Assembly (NCBI GenBank): GCA_976226885.1
Contig: OZ320315.1
Coordinates: 43,090,001-43,154,000, forward strand
DNA length: 64,000 nt
From: Iphione sp. A-MEVVRFRX5
Taxonomy: Eukaryota
Reading direction: 5' to 3'
Shown in pieces: positions 1-64,000 of the stretch; the stretch's first letter is position 1, and each line of letters starts with the position of its first letter. Position numbers and translations under genes: made by a program. Below the pieces are notes generated by a model. The model saw only the letters and a list, made by a program, of their open reading frames with translations, was not told the origin of the DNA and ran no database searches.

Positions 1-1632
1 TCAGAGGAATAAATCTTTAAGCCCATTGACTGTATATTTCTAGGACTTAATCCTCTCTAAGTAGGTACTCAAGACGGTCGGGTTTATCGTCTCTGCCTAC
101 ATGCAGGAGGCCCAGGACAAATGGAAACGTCTGTCTCTTTTTTTACCACTCCCATGAACATGTCTACCTGTCTAATGAACGCCCGATTGTTTTAACACTC
201 TAGTAACCACCGATACATCGGATATTAGTATAAATGTAGTTTTTTTGGACGATGGATAGGATGCATTCTGTTCGATATTGTTGTAGTGACCTCAAAGACA
301 ACGACGCACATGATCCTGACCAGACTTGACTTTGGTCTCGGATGAAACTAGTACGTGTACATTGTCACCGGCCTGCTCATTGTTTGTCTTCACAGATCAT
401 CTCTGTTACTTCTGTATTATTCGTGTTTGCCGTCTTCGGGAAGGACAGTTTACCAACGACAGTGTGCCATATACATCCACATATCCACATGCATTCTAGA
501 TATTTCCAAAGAGTATCCTTTGGTATGAATACACAGGCACGCACAGTATAGGCACTTTCTCACTTTGTACATGTACGGAGGCATACATATAGAAGAATGA
601 GTTTCTATATTTGGTTAGAACAAGAAGATGTCTGAAGATGTCTAAGTTAAAAACAAATGCGTGTGTACTTGTAAAGCGTGGGATGGCGCCGTCCCCCGTC
701 TACCCTCACTACCCACTCGAAGCGTAACATGGATCATTTTACTGTCCTTCCTCGTAGAGAGAGTAGATATATCTAAGTGCAAGTATACATGTAATACTCT
801 CGCAAGTTGTTTAGCCTTCTCTGATAACGATGTATGAGAAAAACCTCCATGAACAATACTGTCTCCGTGTCACATAAATACATTTCTATCCCCGGTAGGT
901 TATGCAGAACCCAGCAACACACGCAACAGATACAAAATTTGCTTTATTTTTCATTTATCAGTGATCTGTATCAATATTCATTGAAGACCAGTCTTCTCAC
1001 AAGCATAGCAAATGTAATTTTCTTGTTATGCCTAGCCATGATCCACTGTACATATTATGTACAGTGAAGCATGGCCAGAGGACCTCCATTTAGGAAGGAG
1101 TAGAGAATGTTATAACATGCTCTATTTGATATGGACTACTTTTTGTCTGCAATAGCAATCAAGTACATAACCTAAACTTGACGAATAGAAGCACAGATTC
1201 TCCTTATGTAACAGATACATAAACCAAAGCTTATGGAGGTGTTGATGCAGAACACCACATAATACCAAAACTTCCAAACCAAAAAAAAAGGTCAATTCTC
1301 CCTTTTGATACAGAGGAGAAAATCCACCAGATGAAATGCTTGTTTAAGGAGAAACCATCAATTCCAAAAGTCCTATGTCTGTAAATTTTCTTGATGGGCA
1401 GGGTAGATTATAATACGCACACATTTTCTGAAAAAAATGACATATAATTTCATACATGTTTACAAATACATGTATACTTTGTGGTGATCGCATACTGCAA
1501 TCATTTAATTTTGTCTTGGGACGGAAGAGTGTTCCAGCTGCTGTGATCCGTATCTTAATTTGGCTTTTCATCTTAGTTGAGACATGGTTGTAATGTCTTG
1601 CAGATTTCAGTTGCACAATAAGATTTTAAGAA

Positions 1633-1862
1633 GTTTCCATGCACGCATGTCAGAATGCACATCCGTGCATGTTTCAGTGCATATTTTTTTGAAACTATGA
1701 TTAACATGATGAGTGTACCCATGTAAGTGTGTCAGTGTGTGTCTGTGCATGCCCATGTGTAGCCATGTTTGAAAAATGGAACAGGTCCCATATCAGCTTA
1801 ATAGAAACATACCTGTGCATGGTCTCACATGGACAGACACGCCAACATGCGTGCATGGGAAC
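1633..1862. repeat. Small inverted-repeat element (possible old MITE)
   Basis: GTTTCCATGCACGCATGT (1633-1650) vs ACATGCGTGCATGGGAAC (1845-1862), 17/18 complementary. No TSD established. Confidence 0.4.
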
Positions 1863-3829
1863 CCAGCCTAAATCTTGAAAATTTGTGAAATAAGTTTGCC
1901 AGCATATTGAAATCTTAACCTGAGACCTCATTGGTTAATCAAATGACATACAATTAGGCACATAAAAGCACATACATGTCAAAGAGCAGGGAAACCTAAA
2001 TAAAAATGTACCTTCTTGCAACCTAATACTTGTGTCACCTCTCTTCTTGAACAAGCAAGAACAAACAAGAGCATTCCTCCAGCTGTAACGTTATTCTTGA
2101 TTTACTTGCTACCATATAATCAACTCATGCTTACTGAGCACTCTGTTTACAAATATTCCTCATATCCAAATGTATTCTAAAAGAACGATAAGACATAAAA
2201 TATATTATTACAATTTCCTTTCTCAAATGTTTCCTTTTGTTGAAATAAAATTCTCAGAAACAGATATTGTCCAGTAAACATAGGCTGACCGTATATTCTT
2301 TATATGAATGCAGTAAAGAGGGTAATGAATGTGATCAGTTACTTACTATCACTTAATCAATTTATTGTGACCTTTTATATGTGACTCATGTTGTCCTAAT
2401 AGCTGGTATATGATTGTGGCTTCAAGCTACTCTCTACCATAAACTTCAAATGGAGGGTTTTATCTGTAGACTGGCAAGACGTCTTGAGCATACATGTAGG
2501 GTAATAAAAATGTGGATGGATGTGGCTGTGGTACTGACATTGTACTAGGCATTTCACATCATTTTCTCCTCCTGTTTTTCCTTCTCCGCCTCCTCTTCTT
2601 CCTTATGCTCTCTCTCCACTGTCACTCACTGCTAGCTGCTTCTCTGACAACAGCTTCTATCGCTGTAACTAATGTGGAAACCTATTGTGCAGGTAGACCT
2701 GCATTAGTTACTTGGGTATTTACATATATGTATTTTATAAGTTACTTGTGTACTTGACTTATCTGATGGAATTAAATGTATCTGGGACCTGTCCCTAGCT
2801 GTGTAAAAAATAATGTATATGCAGTTGTGCATAGAACTGTCAACTCTGTCACTCAGGTGTATGAATAGACCTCAAGAATCACACACATTAGACCTCAAGA
2901 ATCACACACATCAGAAATTCAGTAGAGCTAATCAAATGGGACACCCAAGTTGAGAATTTTAGAGGTCTCTCTATATTTTCTATTAATGTAAATGGATTCT
3001 CAGAAAAGGGTTTTTAAGAAATTGAAATTATTCGACTGCCATGTAAATAATAATACCAAAATCAGTTTCAATCATATATTAACCATTGCAACGGACATTT
3101 GATGCTAATGAAAACATACAGTTATGAAGGAGTATTAAGTTAATTTATTTGTTTATCCTATCAAGCCTTTATGGTCATTACTTGTTATATATACATATAG
3201 ACCAACACTAACACAGAGTGGAGTGAAACGAAGCTCTCTTTATTCATGACATAAAAATATAAACTTTCGTGGAGAATGCATTATGATACACGAAACGTCT
3301 TGGATAGAACAACATTGCTTGGTAACTCCATGGAGACATACATACATAAACCTGGCAACAACCAAAGGGAAGTGTTTGTGTCTATATTCATATATACGTC
3401 ATATATATCATATATGGTCGGTTTTTATATCCTAGTGAAAAGTTATACCATGGAATGCTACTCCCAGGACTTATGGTGAGAATAGCTATTTCCTCCCGGG
3501 GGGGGGGGCTTAAGGGTTTCAGTAATATTTCAATGTATTCCATCTACTTCACTTAATTGTCATTGTTAGAACTGCATTTAGGTACGTCACAGAATTATAA
3601 ATAAGTCTGTGACGTATGTCACTTTGTTGATGGGGAAAGATAATGCTGCTATATTTAATTATACAACTGTTTGGTATGTATTTGAGCTCATTAAATTTAC
3701 GTCACTTTACTGTGATTTGATGCAAAAATTTGCACAGCCATTCAAACCACTTCTAGTTATCCCATTTGGCTGAAACAAAGTTAAGTTTTGCTGTGAAATC
3801 GAAGTAAAAATGAAACATTTTTACTGCAA

Positions 3830-6984: not shown

Positions 6985-9199
6985 TTAATATAAGAAGGAA
7001 AACGTCTCCGGTTGCCTTTTCTGTGAGTCACTGATCTTTGATCCGAAATGCATACCTTCTCACAAAGTTTGACTAAAAAGGCTACCACTGCCAGTCACTC
7101 ATGTCAACTAAGAATGCATCGGACTAAAAAAGCGACTATGGTTACGTATCTTGTCTGAGGCAATACAAGGCCCTTTCGCTTTGTTTTGCTTTACCTTCGC
7201 ACCCATTGATTCGTATCCCCGCTCTAGCTTGGTGGTTCCTTTGTACTCCATCTCGAGAGTCTTTGCGGCCTCACTGTCTTATATCATGAGTATACTCGCC
7301 TAGTATTGCTTGTGTCAGTGGCTCCAGCCACATAGCCACAGGCTTACAATTGCAGGCTGCATTCAGTCGCTATTTTAAACCTGATTCACACTGATAGTTT
7401 ACGCTGAACTAACGTATTTAGGACTACTTGCTGCATGCTAGCAGAGCTAGGAAAGCCTCTGCACAGATACTTATTTAAAAGGTGTCGCTTTGTGTTCTCT
7501 AAGTACGAATGTACACCTCATTCGGTAATTCACTCATCATAAACGTGCTGGATAGATCAGAAAAAAAGACAAATTTGTCAATGTGTAGGATCGAAGGAAA
7601 TTTAACTTGCTGACCCTTTAGGCTATGAGGAGTTTCGCCATTAGCATCTTCCATCAGGAAGTCGGCGACACATGCAAGGCAGGAAACTGTTGTTTTGACC
7701 TTTATAATTGCTAATCTAGGAGCACAAAAGTTTTCATGTGATCTAATCATGACTGTATTCGTTTGCTAAATAACGTAAAATATACTACATATACAACGCA
7801 TCAGGTGAAATATTTTTGGAAAGAGTAGAGCAAGTCATAATGGCAGTACTGATGATTGTACTGATTATTACTCTACATATATAAAACGTTGCCTGAAAAT
7901 AGGTCCGGCCATGAGACTGTCATCTCATACTGATATGGTTTTACAAAAACACAGTATCTATCTTACTGCAGGATATATTAGTATGTTGGTGGCCCAAAGA
8001 AAGATGTTTATTCTTATCTTTTGTATCTAGAATAACTCTTACTAAAACAGTATGATATATGTGGCACTATTTTCCTTACATTGAGTAGGAATACGTATGC
8101 CTATGTATGCACAGTCAAGCAGAAATGAGGGTTGTAACATGGTATCCCCAAACCTGTACTTTGACCCTCCCCCCCCAACTCTCCTCACATAGCTCTGACC
8201 CATCTCCGCCCACCCCTTAAAACCACACACACACACCACCCAACCAGTGCAGGTGCCGAAGGCGCTTGTTGAAGATAAAACACACTTATGTTTAATCTAT
8301 TTTTTACTGACACTACTTTGATGTTAATCTCTTAAAATGTGAATCTGGTTGAGGTAAGCTGCAAAAGTATTGTTTAAGACTTAATGGCCATGCATACATA
8401 CATGTACATTAGAACTTCTTCACATTGTCGTCGGCTCACCTAGGCTGTCGATATGCAATTCTGGTCAAATTGGCGGGGAACAGATCATTTCTCTATATAA
8501 TCTTATAATTGTGGCAAAACATTAAAAATGCAGTCACCCTGTGGTAGCTGTATATTGCGCACCAAAGCAACATACCATATTGACTATGGTTCAGTGTCAC
8601 TGCCCAAGGAGGTGGGGTTGGGGGTTCACTTCACCCTAGGGTATGTAGCAGCGATGAAAATCATTAGAATAACTTTAGAACAGTTTCAGGGTATGCTTAA
8701 TGATGTCTATAATGCAAGCTGCATACCTATAGACAATGCACAATTATTAACATGACACTGGAAATGAGGGGGTATACTGATGGTTGCAGCTTGAATATGA
8801 TTGGAATTGCAGTCAACAAGCCACCGCGGCCACTTTTGCTCGGAATGGTGTTAAAGTTCTACTGCATTTGCACTCTGTAGCTGTATGTCTTGAGACACAA
8901 GTCTGAATCTATGAAAAGAATCCTGCAGGTATCTATATGCATATCTACACATGATGAAAGTGTCTGTGGATCTGCTGAAAAACACATAGTACTATCCCCA
9001 TGTGTGCAAACCTTCCAGACCTGCCATTTTGTACATGGACATCGGAAGGACCACTCCAAGCAGTTAAGGTAGAATTATCCCCAAGCATGCAAACCCTCTG
9101 TACCTGTCACCTGACATGTGTGGGCAGAGCAGCAAACATGCCAGGCACCTGGACCTCATGCATGCCTGCAATAAGCCCAAAACCAGGTGAATAGACCTA

Positions 9200-9440
9200 A
9201 AAGAATGCAAATATCAGGCAAACGTGGCCAGAAAATGGTGGAACTCAGGAAAATCATCCCCAAAAGAAAAAAATGCGGGCAACTTTGGCAGAAAAACAGG
9301 AATGTCAGGCAAATCGGCCAAAAACAGTACAATTCAGACAAATTTGGCTGAAAATGGGAAACAGGCATATTTGGCAAAAAAAAAGGGCAAACCTCAGGCA
9401 TATTTGGCTGAAAAATAGCAACCCTCAAGCATATTTGCCT
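9200..9440. repeat. Degenerate short tandem repeat (GGCA(A/T)ATTTGGC..AAAA)
   Basis: Repeated GGCATATTTGGC/GGCAAATCGGCC motifs followed by A-tracts. Confidence 0.6.
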
Positions 9441-12400
9441 GATATATGCCCATACAGACAGTGCACATAACCCATGCACATGGGGATAAGCCCTGCATCA
9501 GGTGACGGGGAGGTCTGGGCAGCCGGCTTCACATACCAGGTGGTGAACGGACAGTTTGCATGCATGGGGATAGCGCTTACATGCTCTTCTGATCTTCATG
9601 CATGTAAATCTGTAATGACACATAGATGAGCATGGAAATGCGGCTACTGGTGACAGGGGGATGTAAATAGGAGATAATGTATAAGCCAGGAGGCTCATTT
9701 TCTTGTAGAGATATATGAGTATAAGAGAGACATCATAAATAAAGTTCTCTTCTTTTCCATTGATGTACTGATGCGAAAAACAAAGCTCTGAGGACCTGTC
9801 CTTTTCTGTAAGAATGCAGGATCTACATTTGTTACGTGATATTTATATGATAAAGTGGCAAAAACACAGGATTTGCTCTTTCCACATACGTACATGACCT
9901 ATTAACAATAAATACAGACGCACAGACACATACATTATTCTTCTTTTTTCTACCATAACGTATACACAGATTCGTAAATCAAGCTACTGGCACCAAAACA
10001 TTGCCCCAGAAGACACAGCAACACACGGGAAAGGTATCAGAATATATCAGCTATAATGTCTAATATTTTTTACAGTCGTATTAATGAGAAAAATGGTACC
10101 AGTTGTGCCAGAATCAATCCCTCTCCAAACATATAATTTGTGTCCAAAAATACGTGTACGTGCATATGGATCTACAGTCATCTCTATCCACGCTATCACT
10201 TGTTTATTTCGTGTACACTCTATGCACAGACTGTGCACCTACATACTCCTGACTGTTGGGCATTAAATGAGAAATTACAGGCTTTTCTTCTGTATTTAAA
10301 GACTGCCATAAAAAACTAATGAGAATTTGATTTTCTGCCAGGAATTGTTTAAAGCAATGAAGATTTGTTCGCAGAACTCTATTAAACCGACGTTACTTTA
10401 ATTAATTGAACATTTTGTATGAAATTAAGAGACATTAGAGAGCTGCACTTGGAAAAAAGATATTGCAAGGCGGGGATTCGGTTGTCGAAACGTGAGGCTG
10501 AGTAGCACAAAGAAGGTATTGTAAGGTTTTATACGCTGACAGCTAACGCAGATGTTGACTGCCATGTAAGCGAGTATGCCTACAATGGACAGCATTTCTC
10601 AGTTGTGAAATTTACCCTATATTTCGCCAAGTATCATGTCAAATACCACACACCTCACCTACTTCTTTAGATTTCGGTCTGGCATAGTCTAGACAGACTC
10701 ACAATGCACATAAAAAGGAAAAATAAGCACAAATGTACACAGTGGGTTTCGAAACATTCTTATAATAATTCTTTTGTACCGAGGGAGAAAAATAAGGAAT
10801 TGTCCAGAACTGCTACAATCCACTCTGCTAAAACATTTTTGAAATCTTTATATGATTACAGCCATGTGTTCTTATTATTTTGAACAATCCATGTTCACAG
10901 TTGTAGAATTTGTTAGTCATCGAAGCATGATTGTACTGTTGGGGGAGAAAATATTCCAATATGGAAAACGTTTTATCCATCTGCACATGCACAGTCTCAC
11001 AAAAGGTTTCATACTTTGTTCACATTTCAAAAGATATCGTTCGCCAGCCATATAGATCTAGCCTGACTTCGACTCTAAGCAGGCGACAAAAAGTGTCAAG
11101 TGGAATAAAGATGGAAGCGATCCTGTATAGGTAGGTGTCAAGGGGGATGAAGTGGTAGAGATCCCTTCGCTAAATGATTCCCTTTTCATGAAAGCACGTT
11201 TAAATATTACTGTCAGATGAACGACTTGCAAGAAAAGATCAAATGTTGGTCAAACAGACCCCCTAAGAAGTAAAACGCATCTATCGTTACAGCCTTTCCA
11301 CAACTCACCATGCTTTATCCACCAAGCCGCCCTACCTTTTCATTCATGCCATTGTGCATTGTGTATTGACACACACGCTGGCATTCACGGACCCAGGGGT
11401 AAAATATAGTCAATATCACATCCACTTCAATGTGGAACTCATACATTCAATGATCTAGGGGAGAAAGACGACTCTCAAGTAGATATCGATGCGTCAAATT
11501 ACCCCATGGCTTTGTGGCTGTCGAGCAAAACAGCTGCCAAAGGAGCGCAACTTTATACGTGACGGTGGTCTTCCTACCCTCTCGATTCAGGCCATATTGT
11601 GAGCAGTGTTCAGCATGAATAGTACGAACTACAGGAGTTGAACACGTTGACAAGAGGGGGTGACAACCCAGGCCCTCCGAGTCCTCAGATCACCGTTGCC
11701 ATTGCTCTGCTTTATTTGTGTTTTTCTTCTCATTCCCTTAAAAAAAAGAGGGAAGCTGGACTTTCAGGTGGCGGGTGAAGGCATGACAAGCAATGTAAGA
11801 GGGTAGCACATGAAAGAGCTACCACACAAAGTATGGCAGTTCGGCACTGGACCCCCAAGAGTGTGCTTAGATAGCGGATAACCGGCGCCGTGTCTCCAGC
11901 GAGAAAAGGCTTTCGGAACACCAGCACAATGTGAGAGTATTTATTTTCCTCGTCACAAAAGAAACCGACAGAATGAGCTAATTCACTTAAAATGAGCCGG
12001 AAGTTGCGACTTTTTTCCCCTTACTTTTTCACACAACGATGTTGTGAATAATAGGTACAGGCTTCAGTGTTTTATTGGTGTGATAGCTCATTCTATTCGT
12101 TATCCTTGAACCAATAAATACCATGCGATTCTTTTAGTTCTTGATTTCGACAAATTTAACAGATGCTGTCAAAGGTTAAGTTATAGCGATTTAGAAATCG
12201 ATAAGGGATTTTATATGACTTTATTTCCCATTCGAACGTCTCTATGGTGTCGTTAACTGCACTGTTCACGTAGACAGGCACGTCCCATCAACGCTTCATG
12301 GCTGATTGCAAGAAATGCATCTGACCACCCACAATTACATCGCGCGATGTGGTCCAATCTAATAGTGAGGTGTAGAGGTGGGGAGATGTGTCAGCCGCCA

Positions 12401-53070: not shown

Positions 53071-55398
53071 TCATGAAAATTCCATTTTGAAAGTTCCGTT
53101 ACCATGTTTCACAATGAGAATTCTTATGCTATCAGGAAGTGTTATAGAAAGCGTTTCTCCTTGGTTTTCTGCTTCTGCTTTACTGTTACTGACTTTTGAG
53201 TTTACAGAAATTTCACTTCTCGGTTGTACATTTTCTGGAGGTTTTTGTGATTGTTCTTCAATCTGAGCATGTAATAAATCGAGTCCCAAGTCAAAACTGG
53301 CGACGTCTTCATTCTGGTCTTTCTGTTTGGGTGCCTCTGGACACATAGCGGATTGGGCTGGTACGGATTGGGCTGGTACGGATTGGGCTGGTACCTCTGC
53401 TGATACGTCTGCCGCAGGTACACTGGGTAGGGGCGGCTGCAATAGATCACTCACACGTTGTTGCATATCAATAGATTCCCTTTTGTAATTTCTTATTGCA
53501 GAAGATCTATGACCACTACGTACTGCAATGGCTTGCTCATCTATTCCCTTTTCATATAGTCTCGTACAAAGGGTCGCTTTACCCGAATGCCCTGTAATAT
53601 GGCGTCCCTCCATATTAATGCCCGCTTCTGTACACATTTTGTACATGTACTTATCTAGTGTATGAATTCCCACCGGTTGTAAAGAAAATGATATCTTCCC
53701 CTCCAGATTTGGTAATGGTCTTCTATAAAAACGTCCTTCAGTGGGAACTTCGTCCAAATATTTTTTGAACAGATTCACAATACAACGAGGGTTATGAGGA
53801 TTGCTATAGTGGCGAACAAGTCTTGGCTTTGCCTTACACTCATTGGCTCCTGTTACTGCTTTGGCTAGACGCCCATGATAGGTCATATACTCCCGATTTT
53901 CTTGATCCAAATCAATTGAATATTGTGAGACATCTAAATTACCATGCTCATCCCTGGCACGAAAGCCAAATATTTTGCAATTATAAAAGTATGTGCCATA
54001 AGATAAACCTTTGGCTGTATTAACATTAATAACCCCAGAATCCCATAGTTGTCTCTCGTCTTGCTCCGTGATAACATCGGCCCTTTTGGGATGAGTGCCC
54101 ATACCTGTGGCTATTAGTTCCTTTCTACGTGCATCCAACGCATCGCGAAAAGTTTTGAAGTACGTGTCGTCTTTCTTGAGGAGCCACACATCTCGTTTCC
54201 CTAATTCGTCTCGAATATGTCTCTGCAACCCTGCTGCTATACTTGTCAGAGAACCTGCAAAATAAATCAGTATGTTAGAAATATTTCAAGGCTATTTTCC
54301 TTTCTGTTTCCCTCATCTTTATAGATATTTACCTGGGGGGTATGGACTGCCGTCTTTTTTACACACTTCTGTTATAAACTGGGCTAACCAGTAATCTAAC
54401 AGATAGTATTCTTGGTGATCCAGACCAGGTATGGGCCAATTAGTGTCTTCTCTTGTTGCAGGGTGCCAATTGCGCCATACTCGCCAATCACGAAAAATAG
54501 CCACAGCCCAGCACGAGGATGATCGAGTTGACTTCGGTATGCGACGTTTGATACGTTCCTCTAACTCTTTTCCGGTTTGCAACACACCAAATCGTTCAGG
54601 CCCTGTGGATCCTTGTCTGGTTCCTTCATCAATGGGTCGAATCGGCCTCTCTATAAATATGCAAAGGCAATGTATCAATATTGAGCCACATTTCCATTTC
54701 TAGTACAATTTACTTTCCAAACCGAAATTACCAAAATCAACCATGACATTTACCTGATCCAGCCGCAGATGACACCACTCGAGGTTGTTTAGGAGGTACA
54801 GGTTCCGATATAGTCCGACCAAGCACAGGACGTAGCTGTTTTTCTGGAACAGAAATATTGGAAAGTAAATAACCCAAAATACCCATTTTAGTGACATTCT
54901 ATATATTATCACAACATTTAATACACAACAAACCTACTTACCAGAACCAGCGGCAGCTGAAACGGTAGATGATCGTTTCGAACTATCTTTCCTCTCTGAT
55001 CCAGATTCAGCTGAAAACACAATAAATAATACTATTCTCATTCAACAATAAAACATTCTACATAAATAAAATCCATTCCAATTTGCCTAAGAAATACTTG
55101 AAAGTCCACATGGAAAAAAGCAATTACCAGATGCAGTAGCCGCAGAAACCACTCGTGTAGGGTGTGGAGGCGAACGATCGACACTAGCACTAGCCTTTGC
55201 CGAAATCGCAGTAATAACATCAGAAACCGGTGTAGAAGAACCCTGAGGAAATTCTTCCCATAAAACCTCCAATTGAGCTTCCTCCTCATCCTGAGAAAAC
55301 TCGTCGTCCTTCTTGTCACCATGAAAGACCTCAGGAGGCACTTCCACTTGACTCAAGGTCCTCTCCTCGAAAGAGTTGTTCACTGAAGATTCAGCCAT
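53071..55398 (-). CDS. Crypton-type tyrosine recombinase (DUF3504-like), spliced, 643 aa
   Basis: Manually assembled exons (minus): 55398-55128, 55010-54942, 54843-54754, 54650-54333, 54254-53071. Four GT-AG phase-1 introns of 117, 98, 103 and 78 nt give a stop-free 1932-nt CDS. YR catalytic-type motifs GFRARDEH, ITGHSGKAT, RSGHRS and AIRNYKR. Upstream Crypton-like segment IPKSTRSSSCWAVAIFRDW...LDYWLAQFITEVCKKDGSPYPP. Confidence 0.9.
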
Positions 55399-60330: not shown

Positions 60331-60440
60331 GCCTGTTAACCGCCTAGCTGAGTACAGGCGAACCCGCCTATTGCGACCACCTAAGGGACTGAGCCTAAGT
60401 GGTCGCATTAGGCAGGTGGTCGCCCAAGGCATTGGGTGCC

Positions 60441-60795
60441 TCCCTCTCTCTCTATGTCCCTCTCTCTGTATCCCTCTCTCTCTCTATGTCCCTCTCTCTG
60501 TATCCCTCTCTCTCTCTATGTCCCTCTCTCTGTATCCCTCTCTCTCTCTATGTCCCTCTCTATGTGTCCTTCTCTATGGGGAATATTATGGGGAAAAGAA
60601 GTCTGAATCAACTGAATATTATGGGGAAAAAGTCCAAGTTAACTGAATATTATGGGGAAAAAGTCCAAGTTAACTGAATATTATGGGGAAAAAGTCCAAG
60701 TTAACTGAATATTATGGGGAAAAGAAGTCTAAATTAACTGAATATTATGGGGAAAAGAAGTCTAAATTAACTGAATATTATGGGGAAAAGAAGTG
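60441..60795. repeat. Two adjacent minisatellites inside the Tigger 3' region
   Basis: ~32-bp (CCCTCTCTCTCTATGTCCCTCTCTCTGTAT)-like units at 60441-60560, then ~31-bp (AACTGAATATTATGGGGAAAAAGTCCAAGTT)-like units, about 7 copies, at 60579-60795. Confidence 0.9.
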
Positions 60796-60864
60796 TACAT
60801 GTACATTAACTGAATGTAAAATGAAGAAATACAACTGACTTCAAGAATAACATTTACATACATT

Positions 60865-60870
60865 TATTGC
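60865..60870 (-). terminator. Putative poly(A) signal of the transposase mRNA
   Basis: Minus-strand AATAAA ~55 nt after the stop codon, followed by T/G-rich sequence. Confidence 0.5.
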
Positions 60871-60925
60871 AATGAGAAATGGATATGCTTAATAAATAAA
60901 TTGTATCATAGTCCATGTGGATCAG

Positions 60926-62521
60926 TTACTCCTTCTTAAAAAACTGGTGGAGTGTTGGCTGTACCCTGATCCTTTGGGCCTGGTTTTTCTCAAGAATGTT
61001 AATAATGTCCATGACAGGGTCCAATGCAGGGGCAATACCCTTGGACAGGCAATACACCCTAACATGATCCAGCATGTTGAGGATCTCATGATGATTGTGC
61101 TGGCTTCCTGGGATGGGATCATCATCAGCATCATCATCATCATCACCATCCCTGGATTCCTCATCTGGTACCTGTAGACCAGCCTTCTCCTTGGCCTCCT
61201 CAATGATACGTTGTTCCCACCCCATGTCCTGGGGATCATGAGATGGGCAGCTGGTCATCTCCTCATAGTCCTCCCTGGTCAGAGCTGTCCCTGGGAGGTG
61301 AAGTCCTTCATGTGTCCTTCTGAGGAGCTCTGCCAGGGGGATCTCCTCCTCATCTTCCTCCTCAGGCTGTGACTGGCTGAGGTCAGCATCACCTGGGTCA
61401 GGGGATACTCCTGCCTTCTTGAAGCACTTGAAGACTGTGCTGGCTGGCACAGCCTTCACAGCTGCCTTCATCCAGGTGATGGCCATGTGGACATCAACAC
61501 TTTTGATGATCTGCTGGGAGTCTGCTCCACTGTCCAACTTGGCCAGCACATGCCTGAGGACTGCTTTCTGATAGTGGCTCTTCACACATTTGATGATCCC
61601 CTGGTCAAGGGGCTGCAGCAGGGAAGTGGTGTTGGCAGGGAGGAAGACCAACTTCACATTGGACACCTTCAGATGATGTGGATGTGAAGGGGCATTGTCC
61701 AAGATCAATGCCACTTTCCTGCCCTGGGCCTTCATCTTCTTGTTGAAGGCCTGGAGCCACTCCTCAAAGATTGAAGAGACCATCCAGGCCTTCTTGTTGG
61801 ACCTCCATGTCACTGGTAAATCATTGAGGTCCAAATTCCTGAAGGCCCTGGGTCTTGCAGCCTTCCCAATGACCAGGGGCTTCTCAAAGTGTCCAGCCAT
61901 TGATACACAGAGGGCAAGAGTCAACCTCTCCTTACTCTTCTTACCCCCAGCTGTGTCACTGCCCTTCACAGCAAGGGTTCTGTCTGGGAGGACCCGGAAG
62001 AAGATACCAGTCTCATCCATGTTGAAGATGTCTTCTTCCTTGTATCCCTCAAGGAGGGTGGGCAGCCTCTCATGCCACTGCTCTACTGCCCCCTCAGGGA
62101 CACTGGCCCTCTCTCCAGACAACTTGACCCCTGAGATGCAGTGCCTCTTCTTGAATCTGTGGAGCCATCCCTCAGAGGCAGAGAAGTTGTCTATCCCCAG
62201 TTCCTTGCTGATATGCTGGGCTCTCTCCCTGATCAATGGTCCTGAGACAGGGACCTGGGAATCCCTGGCTGTCTGAAACCAGGTGAAGACTGTCTCATCC
62301 ATGAGGGTGAGGTCAGGGGATAGATGTCTTCTCTTGGCCTGAGGGTTGAAGGACCTATCAAAGTCCTCCATGATGGATGCCTTCCTCTTCAAGATGTTGT
62401 GGACTTGGGTCTTGCCTATGTTGAATTGGCTGGCAAGAGTCCTCTGACTTTTACCCTCACTAGCCTGGATCAGTTTCACCTTCTCAGCAAGACACAGTTC
62501 TCTTCTCTTGGGGGAAGACAT
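60926..62521 (-). CDS. pogo/Tigger-family transposase (CENP-B-like HTH + DDE_1), 531 aa, intact
   Basis: Uninterrupted ORF. N-terminal psq/CENP-B HTH (RRELCLAEKVKLI...LASQFNIGKTQVHNILK), second HTH (FSASEGWLHRFKKRH) and catalytic motifs NMDETG, ILDNAPSH and LQPLDQG. There are 30 residues between the 2nd and 3rd Asp (DD30D). Acidic C-terminal tail. Confidence 0.96.
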   Translation of the reverse strand: MSSPKRRELCLAEKVKLIQASEGKSQRTLASQFNIGKTQVHNILKRKASIMEDFDRSFNPQAKRRHLSPDLTLMDETVFTWFQTARDSQVPVSGPLIRERAQHISKELGIDNFSASEGWLHRFKKRHCISGVKLSGERASVPEGAVEQWHERLPTLLEGYKEEDIFNMDETGIFFRVLPDRTLAVKGSDTAGGKKSKERLTLALCVSMAGHFEKPLVIGKAARPRAFRNLDLNDLPVTWRSNKKAWMVSSIFEEWLQAFNKKMKAQGRKVALILDNAPSHPHHLKVSNVKLVFLPANTTSLLQPLDQGIIKCVKSHYQKAVLRHVLAKLDSGADSQQIIKSVDVHMAITWMKAAVKAVPASTVFKCFKKAGVSPDPGDADLSQSQPEEEDEEEIPLAELLRRTHEGLHLPGTALTREDYEEMTSCPSHDPQDMGWEQRIIEEAKEKAGLQVPDEESRDGDDDDDADDDPIPGSQHNHHEILNMLDHVRVYCLSKGIAPALDPVMDIINILEKNQAQRIRVQPTLHQFFKKE

Positions 62522-62524
62522 CTT

Positions 62525-62812
62525 GAAGTGCTGGAGTGGTCGGCAGAAGTGCTGGAGTGGTCGGCAGAAGGTCTGGAGCAGTCGGCAGAAGTGCTGGAGT
62601 GGTGGGCAGAAGTGCTGGAGTGGTCGGCAGACGTGACGGCGCGGTCGGCAGAAGGTCTGGAGTGGTGGGCAGAAGTGCTGGAGTGGTCGGCAGACGTGAC
62701 GGTGCGGTCGGCAGAAGGTCTGGAGCAGTCGGCAGAAGTGCTGGAGTGGTGGGCAGAAGTGCTGGAGTGGTCGGCAGACGTGACGGCGCGGTCGGCAGAA
62801 GGTCTGGAGCAG
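62525..62812. repeat. 21-bp variant minisatellite (~14 units) in the transposase 5'UTR
   Basis: Units such as GAAGTGCTGGAGTGGTCGGCA, GAAGGTCTGGAGCAGTCGGCA and GACGTGACGGCGCGGTCGGCA, directly abutting the ATG. Confidence 0.9.
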
Positions 62813-62819
62813 TGCTGGT

Positions 62820-62853
62820 GAATGATTCAGAGGTTCAGCTGTGCTCCCTTATA
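62820..62853 (-). promoter_or_regulatory. Putative TATA box + Initiator of the Tigger transposase
   Basis: Minus-strand TATAAG (62853-62848) and TCATTC (62825-62820; matches invertebrate Inr TCAKTY). The Inr A (62823) lies 30 nt from the first T of TATA. Confidence 0.6.
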
Positions 62854-62874
62854 TCCCACCGTGGAGCCAGGAAA

Positions 62875-63335
62875 CCCTCAAACAAGCGCGACAGGAGCTC
62901 CTCTAAGGTCGGTTCCCATCAAATTGGCGGGTATCAGGGCCGGTGGTCGCCCCGGATACCCTCAAACAAGCGCGACAGGAGCTCCTCTAAGGTCGGTTCC
63001 CTTCAAATTGGCGGGTATCAGGGCCGGTGGTCGCCCTGGATACCCTCAGAAAACGCTAACTTTGCTTGAGCCCCCGCCGTCAGACCCTCAAATAGGCAGG
63101 ACACAAGCCCGTGGTCGCCCCAGATACCCTCAAACAAGCATGACAGAAGTTCCTCTAAGGTTGTTTTCATAGAGTTTTGTGGATACCGGGGCCGGCGGTC
63201 GCCCCGGATACCCTCAGACAAGCACGACAGGAGTTCCTCTAGGGTTGTTTTCATAGTGTTTCGTGGGTATCAGGGCCGGCGGTCGCCCGGATACCCTCAG
63301 AAAATGCTAACTTTGCTTGAGCCCCCGCCGTCAGG
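62875..63335. repeat. ~84-bp degenerate tandem repeats upstream of the Tigger promoter
   Basis: CCCTCAAACAAGCGCGACAGGAGCTCCTCTAAGG...GGGTATCAGGGCCGGTGGTCGCCC recurs at 62875 and 62959, with diverged copies to ~63335. Confidence 0.85.
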
Positions 63336-64000
63336 GTCGTTTTCGTAGCGGTGGTCGCAATAGACACCTTGAAATCATAGTTTTTGTTCTTAAAATGCTG
63401 GTCTTAATAGGCGAATGGTCGCCCAAACCAGTGGTCACCATAGGCGAAGTATCCCATATAGAGAATGTACTAAAATTCCATCCGATCTGAGCAAAAGTGG
63501 TCGCCATAGGCGAGTGGTCGCCCCAAGCGTATGGTCGCATGGTGGGGTTCTCCTGTATTTGAACCACACCAATTACATCCCATTTCATGGGAAACATTCA
63601 GATTCATGGTAAACATGCCAAGTATGTTCTCCTATATGTGTAGTGTAAAGACAGACAAAACAGGCAGGCTACGGCATCGTTCACATATAACCGGATATTT
63701 GCGTTCTGCACCCGGACACAGGAGAGATTTTTTTCCAGCCTGCCTTTACTACTATAGGCATTCACATACATACAGATATTTCCAGACACGGACACGGGTG
63801 CGTATTTCAAACCGTCTTGGATGGGTTTGGTCCAGATACATGTCCAGATTCCTATAGACACAATGTTGAAGGGACACCTGACTACCATATGGAAGCAATT
63901 AACTACTGAGCACTGCAGGTGGTCCCTCCGGACCCATGTCCGGGGACAGATTTTTCATCAGGATGCATGTGAACAGGCCCTACCTGCTTACAACCATGCC

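Follow-up and report, generated by a model that had tools for sequence, protein, structure and literature searches.

A Tigger transposon of Iphione sp. with a nearly CpG-free transposase gene: signs of methylation-type decay and of selection against CpG

The transposase gene of a pogo/Tigger DNA transposon in Iphione sp. contains 2 CpG dinucleotides, against 108.4 expected from its base composition (observed/expected ratio, o/e, 0.018). The gene is an ORF of 1596 nt at 60926..62521 on the minus strand of the window, which is the whole 64,000-nucleotide stretch of DNA that was analysed. On balance, we favour the explanation that this is a recently active autonomous Tigger whose core is held essentially CpG-free in this genome by methylation-type decay together with selection in the propagating lineages.

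The element and its activity

The ORF encodes a 531 aa protein with three Pfam domains, all above their curated cut-offs: DDE_1 (E=5.5e-43, profile 1-177 of 177), HTH_Tnp_Tc5 (E=2.1e-17), and CENP-B_N (E=2.7e-07). Conserved motifs assign the triad to D169 (NMDET), D275 (LDNAPSH), and D306 (PLDQG). The last two aspartates are spaced 30 residues apart (DD30D), and the Tigger range is 29-36 residues (PMC7386202). The arrangement TA/CAGG...CCTG/TA was found in 24/24 copies with both ends found (of 30) and at every lone end, and the flanks are unrelated. Judged by its domains, DD30D triad, TA duplication, and short inverted ends, the element is a pogo/Tigger DNA transposon, and it resembles known members in all of these features and in its single intronless ORF (PMC7386202).

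A genome search returned 1123 candidate copies, the best 40 of which are 97-100% identical, and 26/30 fetched copies are intact. Private divergence among copies is about 0.19% per site, and the third-position pairwise distance in the window family is 2.4%. Private variants are spread evenly over the codon positions (27:35:31). Shared variants stand at 11:8:34; 29 of them are synonymous and 24 non-synonymous, whereas 21% synonymous would be expected at random. This skew of shared variants toward third positions and synonymous changes indicates that the lineages have passed a filter on transposase function. So many almost identical copies, with both ORF and ends intact, indicate that the transposon is autonomous and recently active, and the view of the sequence-only reading that the intact ORF is not a decayed dead copy was supported. 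A domesticated host gene of the TIGD/CENP-B-like type, whose promoter is a CpG island and whose body is methylated, would likewise keep its ORF intact by purifying selection, and TIGD genes have a matching domain set. This interpretation is refuted by the copy number, with more than 1100 candidates and the best 40 at such high identity, and by the intact ends, as each copy checked has a TA duplication and termini of its own and lies in unrelated DNA.

The complete element (3201 bp) occupies 60355..63555 on the minus strand, as do all the internal features described here. Similarity among 30 genomic copies begins and ends at these positions, and copy length ranges from 3065 to 3593 bp. Comparison of both ends of the copies places the TA target-site duplication at 63556..63557 (5' side) and 60353..60354 (3' side). 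The terminal inverted repeats lie at 63543..63555 (5', CAGGAGAACCCC...) and 60355..60367 (3', reverse complement CAGGCGAACCCG...). The 5' subterminal region (63300..63542) contains spaced GCGACCA motifs, which are conserved among copies while the spacers differ in mosaic blocks, and 15 CpG are found over 63300-63555 (o/e about 1). It is followed by an 84-bp tandem array of about five units, each with a CGACC word (62870..63299, 29 CpG). The predicted core promoter (62820..62853) consists of TATAAG at 62848-62853 and an initiator-like ATCATTC at 62820-62826, 27 nt downstream. The same 27-nt spacing between TATA and ATCATTC/CTCATTC is common to the window family and two sister lineages, and the third sister lineage has the TATAAG box only, at the equivalent place. 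The interval from the predicted start site to the ATG holds a 21-bp/84-bp tandem array whose unit contains CCGACCAC (62525..62813; 21 CpG, o/e 0.9), and its copy number differs among element copies. Known pogo/Tigger elements differ in this respect, as the 5' part here is unusually long (about 1 kb) and has tandem arrays repeating a word that also occurs beside the ends. Downstream of the ORF, a candidate polyadenylation signal, AATAAA, is predicted at 60863..60868, 57 nt past the stop codon. The 3' internal region (60433..60925) combines unique sequence with two arrays, a 31-bp one at 60581-60794 and a GA-rich 32-bp one at 60441-60575. The 3' subterminal region (60368..60432) has CGACC motifs, two forward and one reverse, and 5 CpG are found over 60355-60432.

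CpG content of the element, its lineages, and its relatives

The ORF has a GC content of 0.522, and its two CpGs, at 61209 and 61995, are each position 1 of an Arg codon (CGT and CGG). The sequence-only reading had reported two CpGs, both in Arg codons, where about 100 would be expected at roughly 50% GC, and exact counting bears this out. Uniform synonymous codon usage would give the ORF 86 CpG, and synonymous codon shuffling with its own usage gave 47 +/- 4 (minimum 34 in 2000 shuffles). CpG controls came from three sources: the window itself, the DNA flanking the fetched copies, and other species. When o/e was computed in tiles of 1.6 kb, a check that had been proposed at the outset, every tile outside the element was at 0.235 or above (median 0.71). 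The Crypton ORF (53071-54102), which had been read correctly as undepleted, has an o/e of 0.67, and two RT ORF fragments from the same genome have 0.25 and 0.84; these few ORFs make up the comparison with other classes of transposon here. A low-CpG stretch at 1-11 kb of the window was searched for a host gene and gave no informative ORF.

A step in CpG density had also been placed at the ATG. On the 5' side it stands, as the 1034 nt upstream of the ORF (62522-63555) contain 66 CpG (o/e 0.80), the closest of them 21 nt before the ATG. On the 3' side, the CpG-free run passes the stop codon and continues through 493 nt of internal DNA, with 0 CpG against 16 expected, although this tract is largely tandem repeat and therefore offers few independent units. 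The description of the upstream DNA as a CpG-dense promoter resembling a CpG island was overstated. Its o/e of 0.80 is near the window median of 0.71, one third of its CpGs belong to a CGACC word that is iterated there and recurs beside both ends, and its o/e without this word is 0.55. Moreover, the predicted core promoter (TATA/initiator region) and leader are CpG-free in the three sister lineages.

All 30 copies of the window family have an ORF with 1-5 CpG, and the CpG purge therefore belongs to the lineage as a whole. One synonymous CpG, in an ACG Thr codon, is carried by 20/30 copies, which means that a single CpG is tolerated or that its loss is still under way. Three further Tigger lineages in the same genome, with proteins 46%, 45%, and 38% identical, show o/e values of 0.00-0.045 in the ORF; their upstream DNA gives values mostly of 0.54-0.93 where the copy is full-length, and 0.30 in the single cl2 copy. 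In contrast, the ORFs of 11 relatives examined from outside this genome have o/e values of 0.34-1.06, and CGN accounts for 199/323 of their Arg codons against 6/120 in the Tiggers of this genome. The CGN codons that remain sit at non-homologous positions in the four lineages, so no functional CpG is conserved. Since four lineages are purged here and 11 relatives elsewhere are not, the purge is host-specific and was neither inherited nor imported.

This distribution bears directly on horizontal transfer, which the sequence-only reading had offered as an alternative. A CpG-poor ORF would have arrived from a heavily methylated donor, with re-equilibration pending. Tigger elements often transfer horizontally (PMC9219625), and the closest outside protein matches, named 'tigger transposable element-derived protein 4/6-like', are 48-49% identical. 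Nevertheless, transfer is very improbable, because the CpG-free state is found in four long-diverged lineages here (38-46% identity) and in 0/11 relatives elsewhere, and the shared-variant test described below indicates that it is actively maintained in this genome. We also know of no genome-wide equilibrium that reaches an o/e of 0.02 in an intact gene.

Mutational decay and selection against CpG

The lost CpGs have left the products of methylation-type mutation. TpG o/e is 1.48 and CpA o/e is 1.46 in the window ORF (exact count), and over the four lineages they are 1.46-1.58 and 1.45-1.50, respectively. Before codons that start with G, C is replaced by T, and in NCN codons G is replaced by A. 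Transitions among inserted copies occurred at 7/10 residual ORF CpG positions and at 112/1640 other C/G positions (odds ratio 32), and the same comparison with private variants only gave an odds ratio of 11. The mutability of residual ORF CpGs is about 10-15 times that of other C/G, as would be expected if the ORF body were methylated in the germline. CpGs in the 5' arrays show a modest excess of mutability, in poor alignments spoiled by differences in array length. A RIP-like spectrum limited to transitions was ruled out, as private transitions and transversions stand at 56:35 and 75:57.

The amount of decay can be compared with the CpG content that remains. Two-state synonymous sites end in C or G at 590/773 and 601/811 sites in non-CpG contexts, against 2/239 and 1/161 in CpG contexts. 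Synonymous CpG use over the four lineages is therefore 3/400 (0.75%), whereas the measured mutability of about 15-fold predicts approximately 16-18%, or about 68 CpG; a bias of about 400-fold would be needed to reach 3. This gap between prediction and observation indicates that methylation decay and purifying selection on the protein are insufficient at that mutability. The sequence-only reading had inferred a long-methylated lineage under purifying selection. The intact ORF, the TpG/CpA excess, and the 10-15-fold mutability agree with that proposal, and the near absence of synonymous CpG does not.

Mutation alone could still account for the pattern if germline methylation were so dense, perhaps in active, transcribed master copies, that decay emptied the synonymous CpGs. 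The TpG/CpA excess and the hypermutable residual CpGs are what it predicts, and young transposons are preferred methylation targets in several invertebrates (PMC8857917). We regard this as a serious but rather improbable alternative. In addition to the shortfall in synonymous CpG, even the lowest tile of the window beyond the element has an o/e of about 0.24, and CpGs gained during the short history of the family (third-position distance 2.4%) would mostly persist, yet no shared gain was found against 16 shared control variants.

The last point comes from a comparison of synonymous variants in two families. CpG-creating transitions common to at least two copies were found at 0/102 and 0/95 sites, whereas the same mutation types in other contexts were shared at 8/85 sites of the first family (p=0.0015) and 8/95 of the second (p=0.0067). 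Pooled over both families, the comparison is 0/197 against 16/180 shared sites (p=5e-6), where the direction of every shared variant is assumed from its frequency. As private variants, CpG-creating changes arise at a normal rate (6/288 vs 14/471 and 5/287 vs 10/472), and the shared-versus-private table, [[0,4],[16,7]], gave p=0.019. The selection test thereby depends on 16 control events, on 4 CpG gains that are private, and on two families only. New CpGs are nearly all confined to single copies. These results suggest that the propagating lineages are under selection against CpG, beyond methylation wear. The earlier alternative of selection to avoid CpG gains support from them, as CpG-creating synonymous changes in this test were private and never shared.

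Such selection could instead act on RNA, if the transposase mRNA were sensed or destabilised through its CpG, and perhaps its UpA, much as ZAP in vertebrates senses viral RNA rich in CpG, and the transcript had been recoded. The support for selection against CpG fits this, and TpA is also low in the ORFs (o/e 0.30-0.38 in the four lineages, 0.40-0.70 in the outside relatives), but low TpA is expected anyway at a GC3 of 0.63. The boundaries of the CpG-free DNA make RNA-level selection unlikely. If the predicted TATA and initiator mark the real start, the 5' UTR of the window family holds 21 CpGs; the CpG-free stretch of the sister lineages starts upstream of the predicted start site, and that of the window element continues about 430 nt beyond the candidate AATAAA. 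To our knowledge, no CpG-RNA sensor has been described from non-vertebrates.

Proposed mechanism, parallels, and significance

In the favoured explanation, decay and selection at the DNA level would together keep a functional core CpG-free. This core would comprise the ORF and the 3' internal DNA, and in the sister lineages also the core promoter and leader. The first force would be methylation-type mutation of CpG to TpG/CpA, whose signature is observed and whose source would be methylation. The second is seen statistically, in that copies gaining a core CpG appear to have founded no successful sublineages; its likely cause is that core CpGs would offer a target to the CpG methylation and silencing machinery of the host. 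The repeat arrays at the termini and just inside them would be the one place where CpGs persist. There, the CGACC word, with about one third of the array CpGs, may be a putative transposase-binding site kept by function, and the iterated word GCGACCAC may be the target of the N-terminal DNA-binding domain of the transposase.

A broader and more tentative proposal, which we consider possible, is that a strong CpG-directed host defence drove at least four independent Tigger lineages to converge on CpG-free cores with CpGs only in arrays of the end-binding word, and that methylation of these arrays may switch transposition. Methylation-sensitive transposase binding occurs in maize Ac and bacterial Tn10.

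A partial parallel is ONSEN (ATCOPIA78) of Arabidopsis, a mobile element without symmetric maintenance-methylation sites, which has been read as an escape from stable silencing (PMC3907296). CG and CHG sites are absent from its LTR promoter, and the LTR is 28% GC (PMC3907296), so that their lack is far less improbable than 2 CpG against 108 expected. As in ONSEN, methylatable symmetric sites have been lost from the functional part of the window element. However, ONSEN is a plant retrotransposon with a stripped promoter, and the window element is an animal DNA transposon with a stripped coding core, whose repeat-rich 5' part retains CpGs. In vertebrate-infecting RNA viruses, CpG suppression linked to the ZAP sensor also involves synonymous CpG removal from a genetic parasite by selection in a given host (as reviewed in PMC12802575). 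That mechanism acts on RNA and in vertebrates, whereas the CpG-free boundaries here fit the DNA better than the predicted transcript. In human LINE-1, propagating and dead copies also differ in CpG content, but intact L1 copies are atypically CpG-rich (PMC12802575) and the propagating lineages here are CpG-free in the core. Invertebrate host genes with body methylation, whose CpG-rich 5' end is unmethylated, resemble the element in keeping CpG at the 5' end over a depleted body with a TpG/CpA excess (PMC8857917). They differ in that the depletion here exceeds that of even the lowest-CpG DNA in the window by a factor of at least 10, and in that the 5' part is not above the genomic background without the repeated motif (o/e 0.55).

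Full-text literature searches on this topic brought up no animal DNA transposon described as having such a CpG pattern, which is not proof of absence. Whether DNA methylation defends invertebrate genomes from transposons is still debated. If the favoured explanation is true, CpG-free propagating lineages would be evolutionary evidence from the parasite side that CpG-directed silencing costs transposons fitness. A natural CpG-free transposase gene would also provide a clean experimental handle, as its expression, methylation, and mobility could be set against those of a version recoded synonymously to be rich in CpG.

Identity and layout of the element

The open reading frame (ORF) at window 60926-62521 (-) encodes a 531-aa product with CENP-B_N, HTH_Tnp_Tc5, and a full-length DDE_1 domain. 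Its catalytic triad is D169/D275/D306 (DD30D), a spacing that falls within the Tigger range (PMC7386202). The ORF belongs to a 3201-bp element (60355-63555, -) with TA duplications and CAGG...CCTG imperfect inverted ends, and the domains, triad spacing, target duplication, and ends together identify a pogo/Tigger member. A domesticated gene was rejected, as the element is a transposon. Searching the 1.18 Gb genome gave 1123 candidate matches, and the best 40 of these candidate copies are 97-100% identical. The ORF, described as intact in the sequence-only reading, is also intact in 26 of 30 fetched copies. TA followed by CAGG, or CCTG followed by TA, stands at every end checked, and the flanks are unrelated between copies. 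Element length varies from 3065 to 3593 bp because the internal arrays differ in size.

In gene orientation, the inverted end leads into about 250 nt in which GCGACCA words occur at intervals, then an 84-bp array (roughly five units), a predicted TATAAG box whose initiator-like ATCATTC lies 27 nt downstream, a 21/84-bp array, and the ORF. A candidate AATAAA lies 57 nt after the stop codon; beyond it come two arrays (31-bp and 32-bp), a short subterminal region where CGACC occurs three more times, and the other inverted end. An ATC/GAT trinucleotide run in the ORF (window 61118-61150) encodes DDDDDADDD, an acidic stretch in the C-terminal portion of the transposase. In three copies fetched from the same genome, the open frame reaches farther upstream across the 21-bp (7-codon) array, so that the ORFs measure 632-661 aa (L010:1501-3486(-), L020:1198-3096(+), and L029:1497-3398(-)).

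CpG depletion of the ORF and the CpG-rich 5' region

The ORF had been read as nearly CpG-free, and exact counting bears this out: only 2 CpGs (61209 and 61995) occur in window 60926-62521, where 108.4 are expected (observed/expected ratio, o/e, 0.018 at GC 0.522). Both TpG (o/e 1.48) and CpA (1.46) are raised. At the codon level, CpG avoidance is total. Codons end in C in 0 of 177 cases before a G-starting codon and in 163 of 354 elsewhere, NCG accounts for 0 of 115 NCN codons, and 29 of 31 Arg codons are AGR. Synonymous-codon shuffling that kept the ORF's own usage left 47 ± 4 CpGs, with a minimum of 34. As an observation, the CpG depletion of the ORF is solid.

The background is far less depleted. 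Tiles of 1.6 kb in the window outside the element have a median CpG o/e of 0.71 and a lowest value of 0.235, and the flanks of sister copies give a pooled 0.54 (45 flanks, 28 other loci). The controls from other superfamilies were three ORFs: a Crypton 7 kb away (identity by Pfam), which has an o/e of 0.67 and is not depleted, as had been noticed earlier, and two RT fragments flanking Tigger copies, L008:3852-4595(+) and L014:3683-4597(+), which contrast strongly (0.25 and 0.84). The lowest CpG o/e of the window outside the element (0.24-0.30) is found at 1000-3200 and 7800-9800, where TpG is raised; an ORF search there returned no informative ORF, and these stretches may be methylated host DNA. 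A 412-nt flank piece outside the element in copy L021 has a CpG o/e of 0.047 at GC 0.46 and may be part of a different CpG-free element.

CpG is abundant upstream of the ATG, as proposed (66 in 1034 nt, o/e 0.80). This 5' kilobase is not the usual CpG island that had been suggested, since its o/e is near the window median. The word CGACC occurs there 21 times against 1.8 expected and holds 21 of the 66 CpGs; without these, the o/e falls to 0.55. CGACC is also present beside both element ends, and 5'-end alignments show conserved GCGACCA words separated by spacers that vary in mosaic blocks. Most simply, these words are putative transposase-binding sites preserved by their function. Between copies, the 250 nt at the 5' terminus (window 63300-63555 and the matching part of copies L002-L030) differ by a mean of 12%, compared with 2.4% at ORF third positions. 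This suggests subfamily recombination or fast spacer turnover, or else unusually constrained synonymous sites.

Host specificity and mutational decay

All 30 copies carry 1-5 CpGs per ORF (majority state 3); therefore, the depletion is older than the insertions. A DDE_1 search of the same genome revealed three further Tigger lineages with 46%, 45%, and 38% protein identity, whose ORFs have a CpG o/e of 0.00-0.045 at GC 0.49-0.52. Their upstream DNA mostly has an o/e of 0.54-0.93 in full-length copies and 0.30 in the single copy of one lineage (cl2). Since synonymous sites are saturated at 38-46% protein identity, the shared CpG-free state must have been maintained in each lineage. All four CpG-free ORFs (window 60926-62521, L031, L032, and L033) are also strongly depleted in TpA (o/e 0.30-0.38). 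GC3 in these ORFs spans 0.58-0.64, the genome as a whole being at about 41-45% GC.

In eleven relatives taken from elsewhere (four marine or other metagenome contigs, two ENA assemblies, Oscarella, Lineus, Ptychodera, Mercenaria, and Branchiostoma), the ORF has a CpG o/e of 0.34-1.06, and CGN makes up 199 of 323 Arg codons, compared with 6 of 120 in the four lineages here. The purge is therefore not ancestral to the clade, and horizontal import, offered earlier as an alternative, is not plausible when four diverged lineages share the purge and eleven relatives elsewhere lack it. Judging from these comparisons, the CpG-free state is imposed in the Iphione genome. That the purge is host-specific and convergent is a solid conclusion.

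Lost CpGs show C to T before G and G to A after C, the pattern of deamination of methylated C. Among copies of two families, transitions affect 7 of 10 residual CpG positions compared with 112 of 1640 other C/G positions (odds ratio 32; 11 with private variants alone), and per-copy rates are 6.1% and 0.42%, respectively. This indicates a roughly 10-15-fold CpG hypermutability in inserted copies, which we read as germline methylation of the element body. Decay at this rate does not account for so deep a purge, because it predicts far more CpG than is seen. Outside CpG contexts, C or G is favoured about 3:1 at two-state synonymous sites of the four lineages (590/773 and 601/811). When these odds are divided by 15, about 42 C-ending codons in 239 before G and about 26 NCG codons in 161 would be expected, whereas 2 and 1, respectively, are observed. 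The bias required is near 400-fold.

Probable selection against CpG in the core

Private variants fall on the three codon positions in a neutral-looking ratio of 27:35:31. Variants shared by at least two copies look filtered (11:8:34; 29 synonymous and 24 non-synonymous, with 21% synonymous expected at random) and therefore mark lineages that went on transposing. Private CpG-creating transitions at all codon positions are no rarer than others, with 6/288 against 14/471 in the window's family and 5/287 against 10/472 in the 38% lineage. The selection test took synonymous T>C and A>G changes at third positions and set those that create CpG against those in other contexts. Shared CpG-creating changes number 0/102 against 8/85 controls in the window's family (p=0.0015), 0/95 against 8/95 in the 38% lineage (p=0.0067), and 0/197 against 16/180 when pooled (p=5e-6); the shared-versus-private table [[0,4],[16,7]] gives p=0.019. 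An inventory of every CpG per copy found new CpGs to be private, except for one non-synonymous change in three copies. CpGs thus arise normally, and their carriers leave no descendants. The window's family is young (third-position pairwise distance 2.4%), so most new CpGs would still be present at a 15-fold faster rate of loss. A far higher loss rate limited to master copies could instead be invoked, but it finds no support here. These sequence counts, modest in number, support selection against CpG in the core.

The predicted transcript boundaries argue against selection through an RNA-level sensor. A TATA-like box upstream of the ATG (predicted; window 62820-62853, and in the fetched sequences L046, L032, L033, L049, and L059) recurs across Tigger lineages only 38-46% identical in protein, and an ATCATTC/CTCATTC initiator word lies 27 nt downstream of it in the window's family and two sister lineages. 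In these two, box and initiator lie about 57-60 nt before the ATG; the third has only a TATAAG box at -80 to -89. CTCCAG-type short repeats stand right before the ATG in each lineage. The nearest CpG in the sister lineages is 95-166 nt upstream of the ATG, and their predicted core promoter and leader are therefore CpG-free. In the window's family, expansion of the 21-bp array has pushed the predicted start to 241-305 nt upstream of the ATG. If this prediction holds, the leader of this family would be CpG-rich, which speaks against such a sensor, as does the CpG-free 3' stretch running about 430 nt beyond the candidate AATAAA.

The closest precedents differ from this system. The ONSEN LTR lacks CG/CHG sites, but the stripped part there is the promoter (PMC3907296). 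Viral CpG suppression acts on RNA and is known from vertebrates, and human L1 is opposite in sign, its competent copies being CpG-rich (PMC12802575). Full-text literature searches on the topic yielded no description of an animal DNA transposon whose CpG-free core is maintained by selection. By a back-of-envelope estimate, a very small selective cost of CpG per core site would be enough, roughly a few hundred times the mutation rate.
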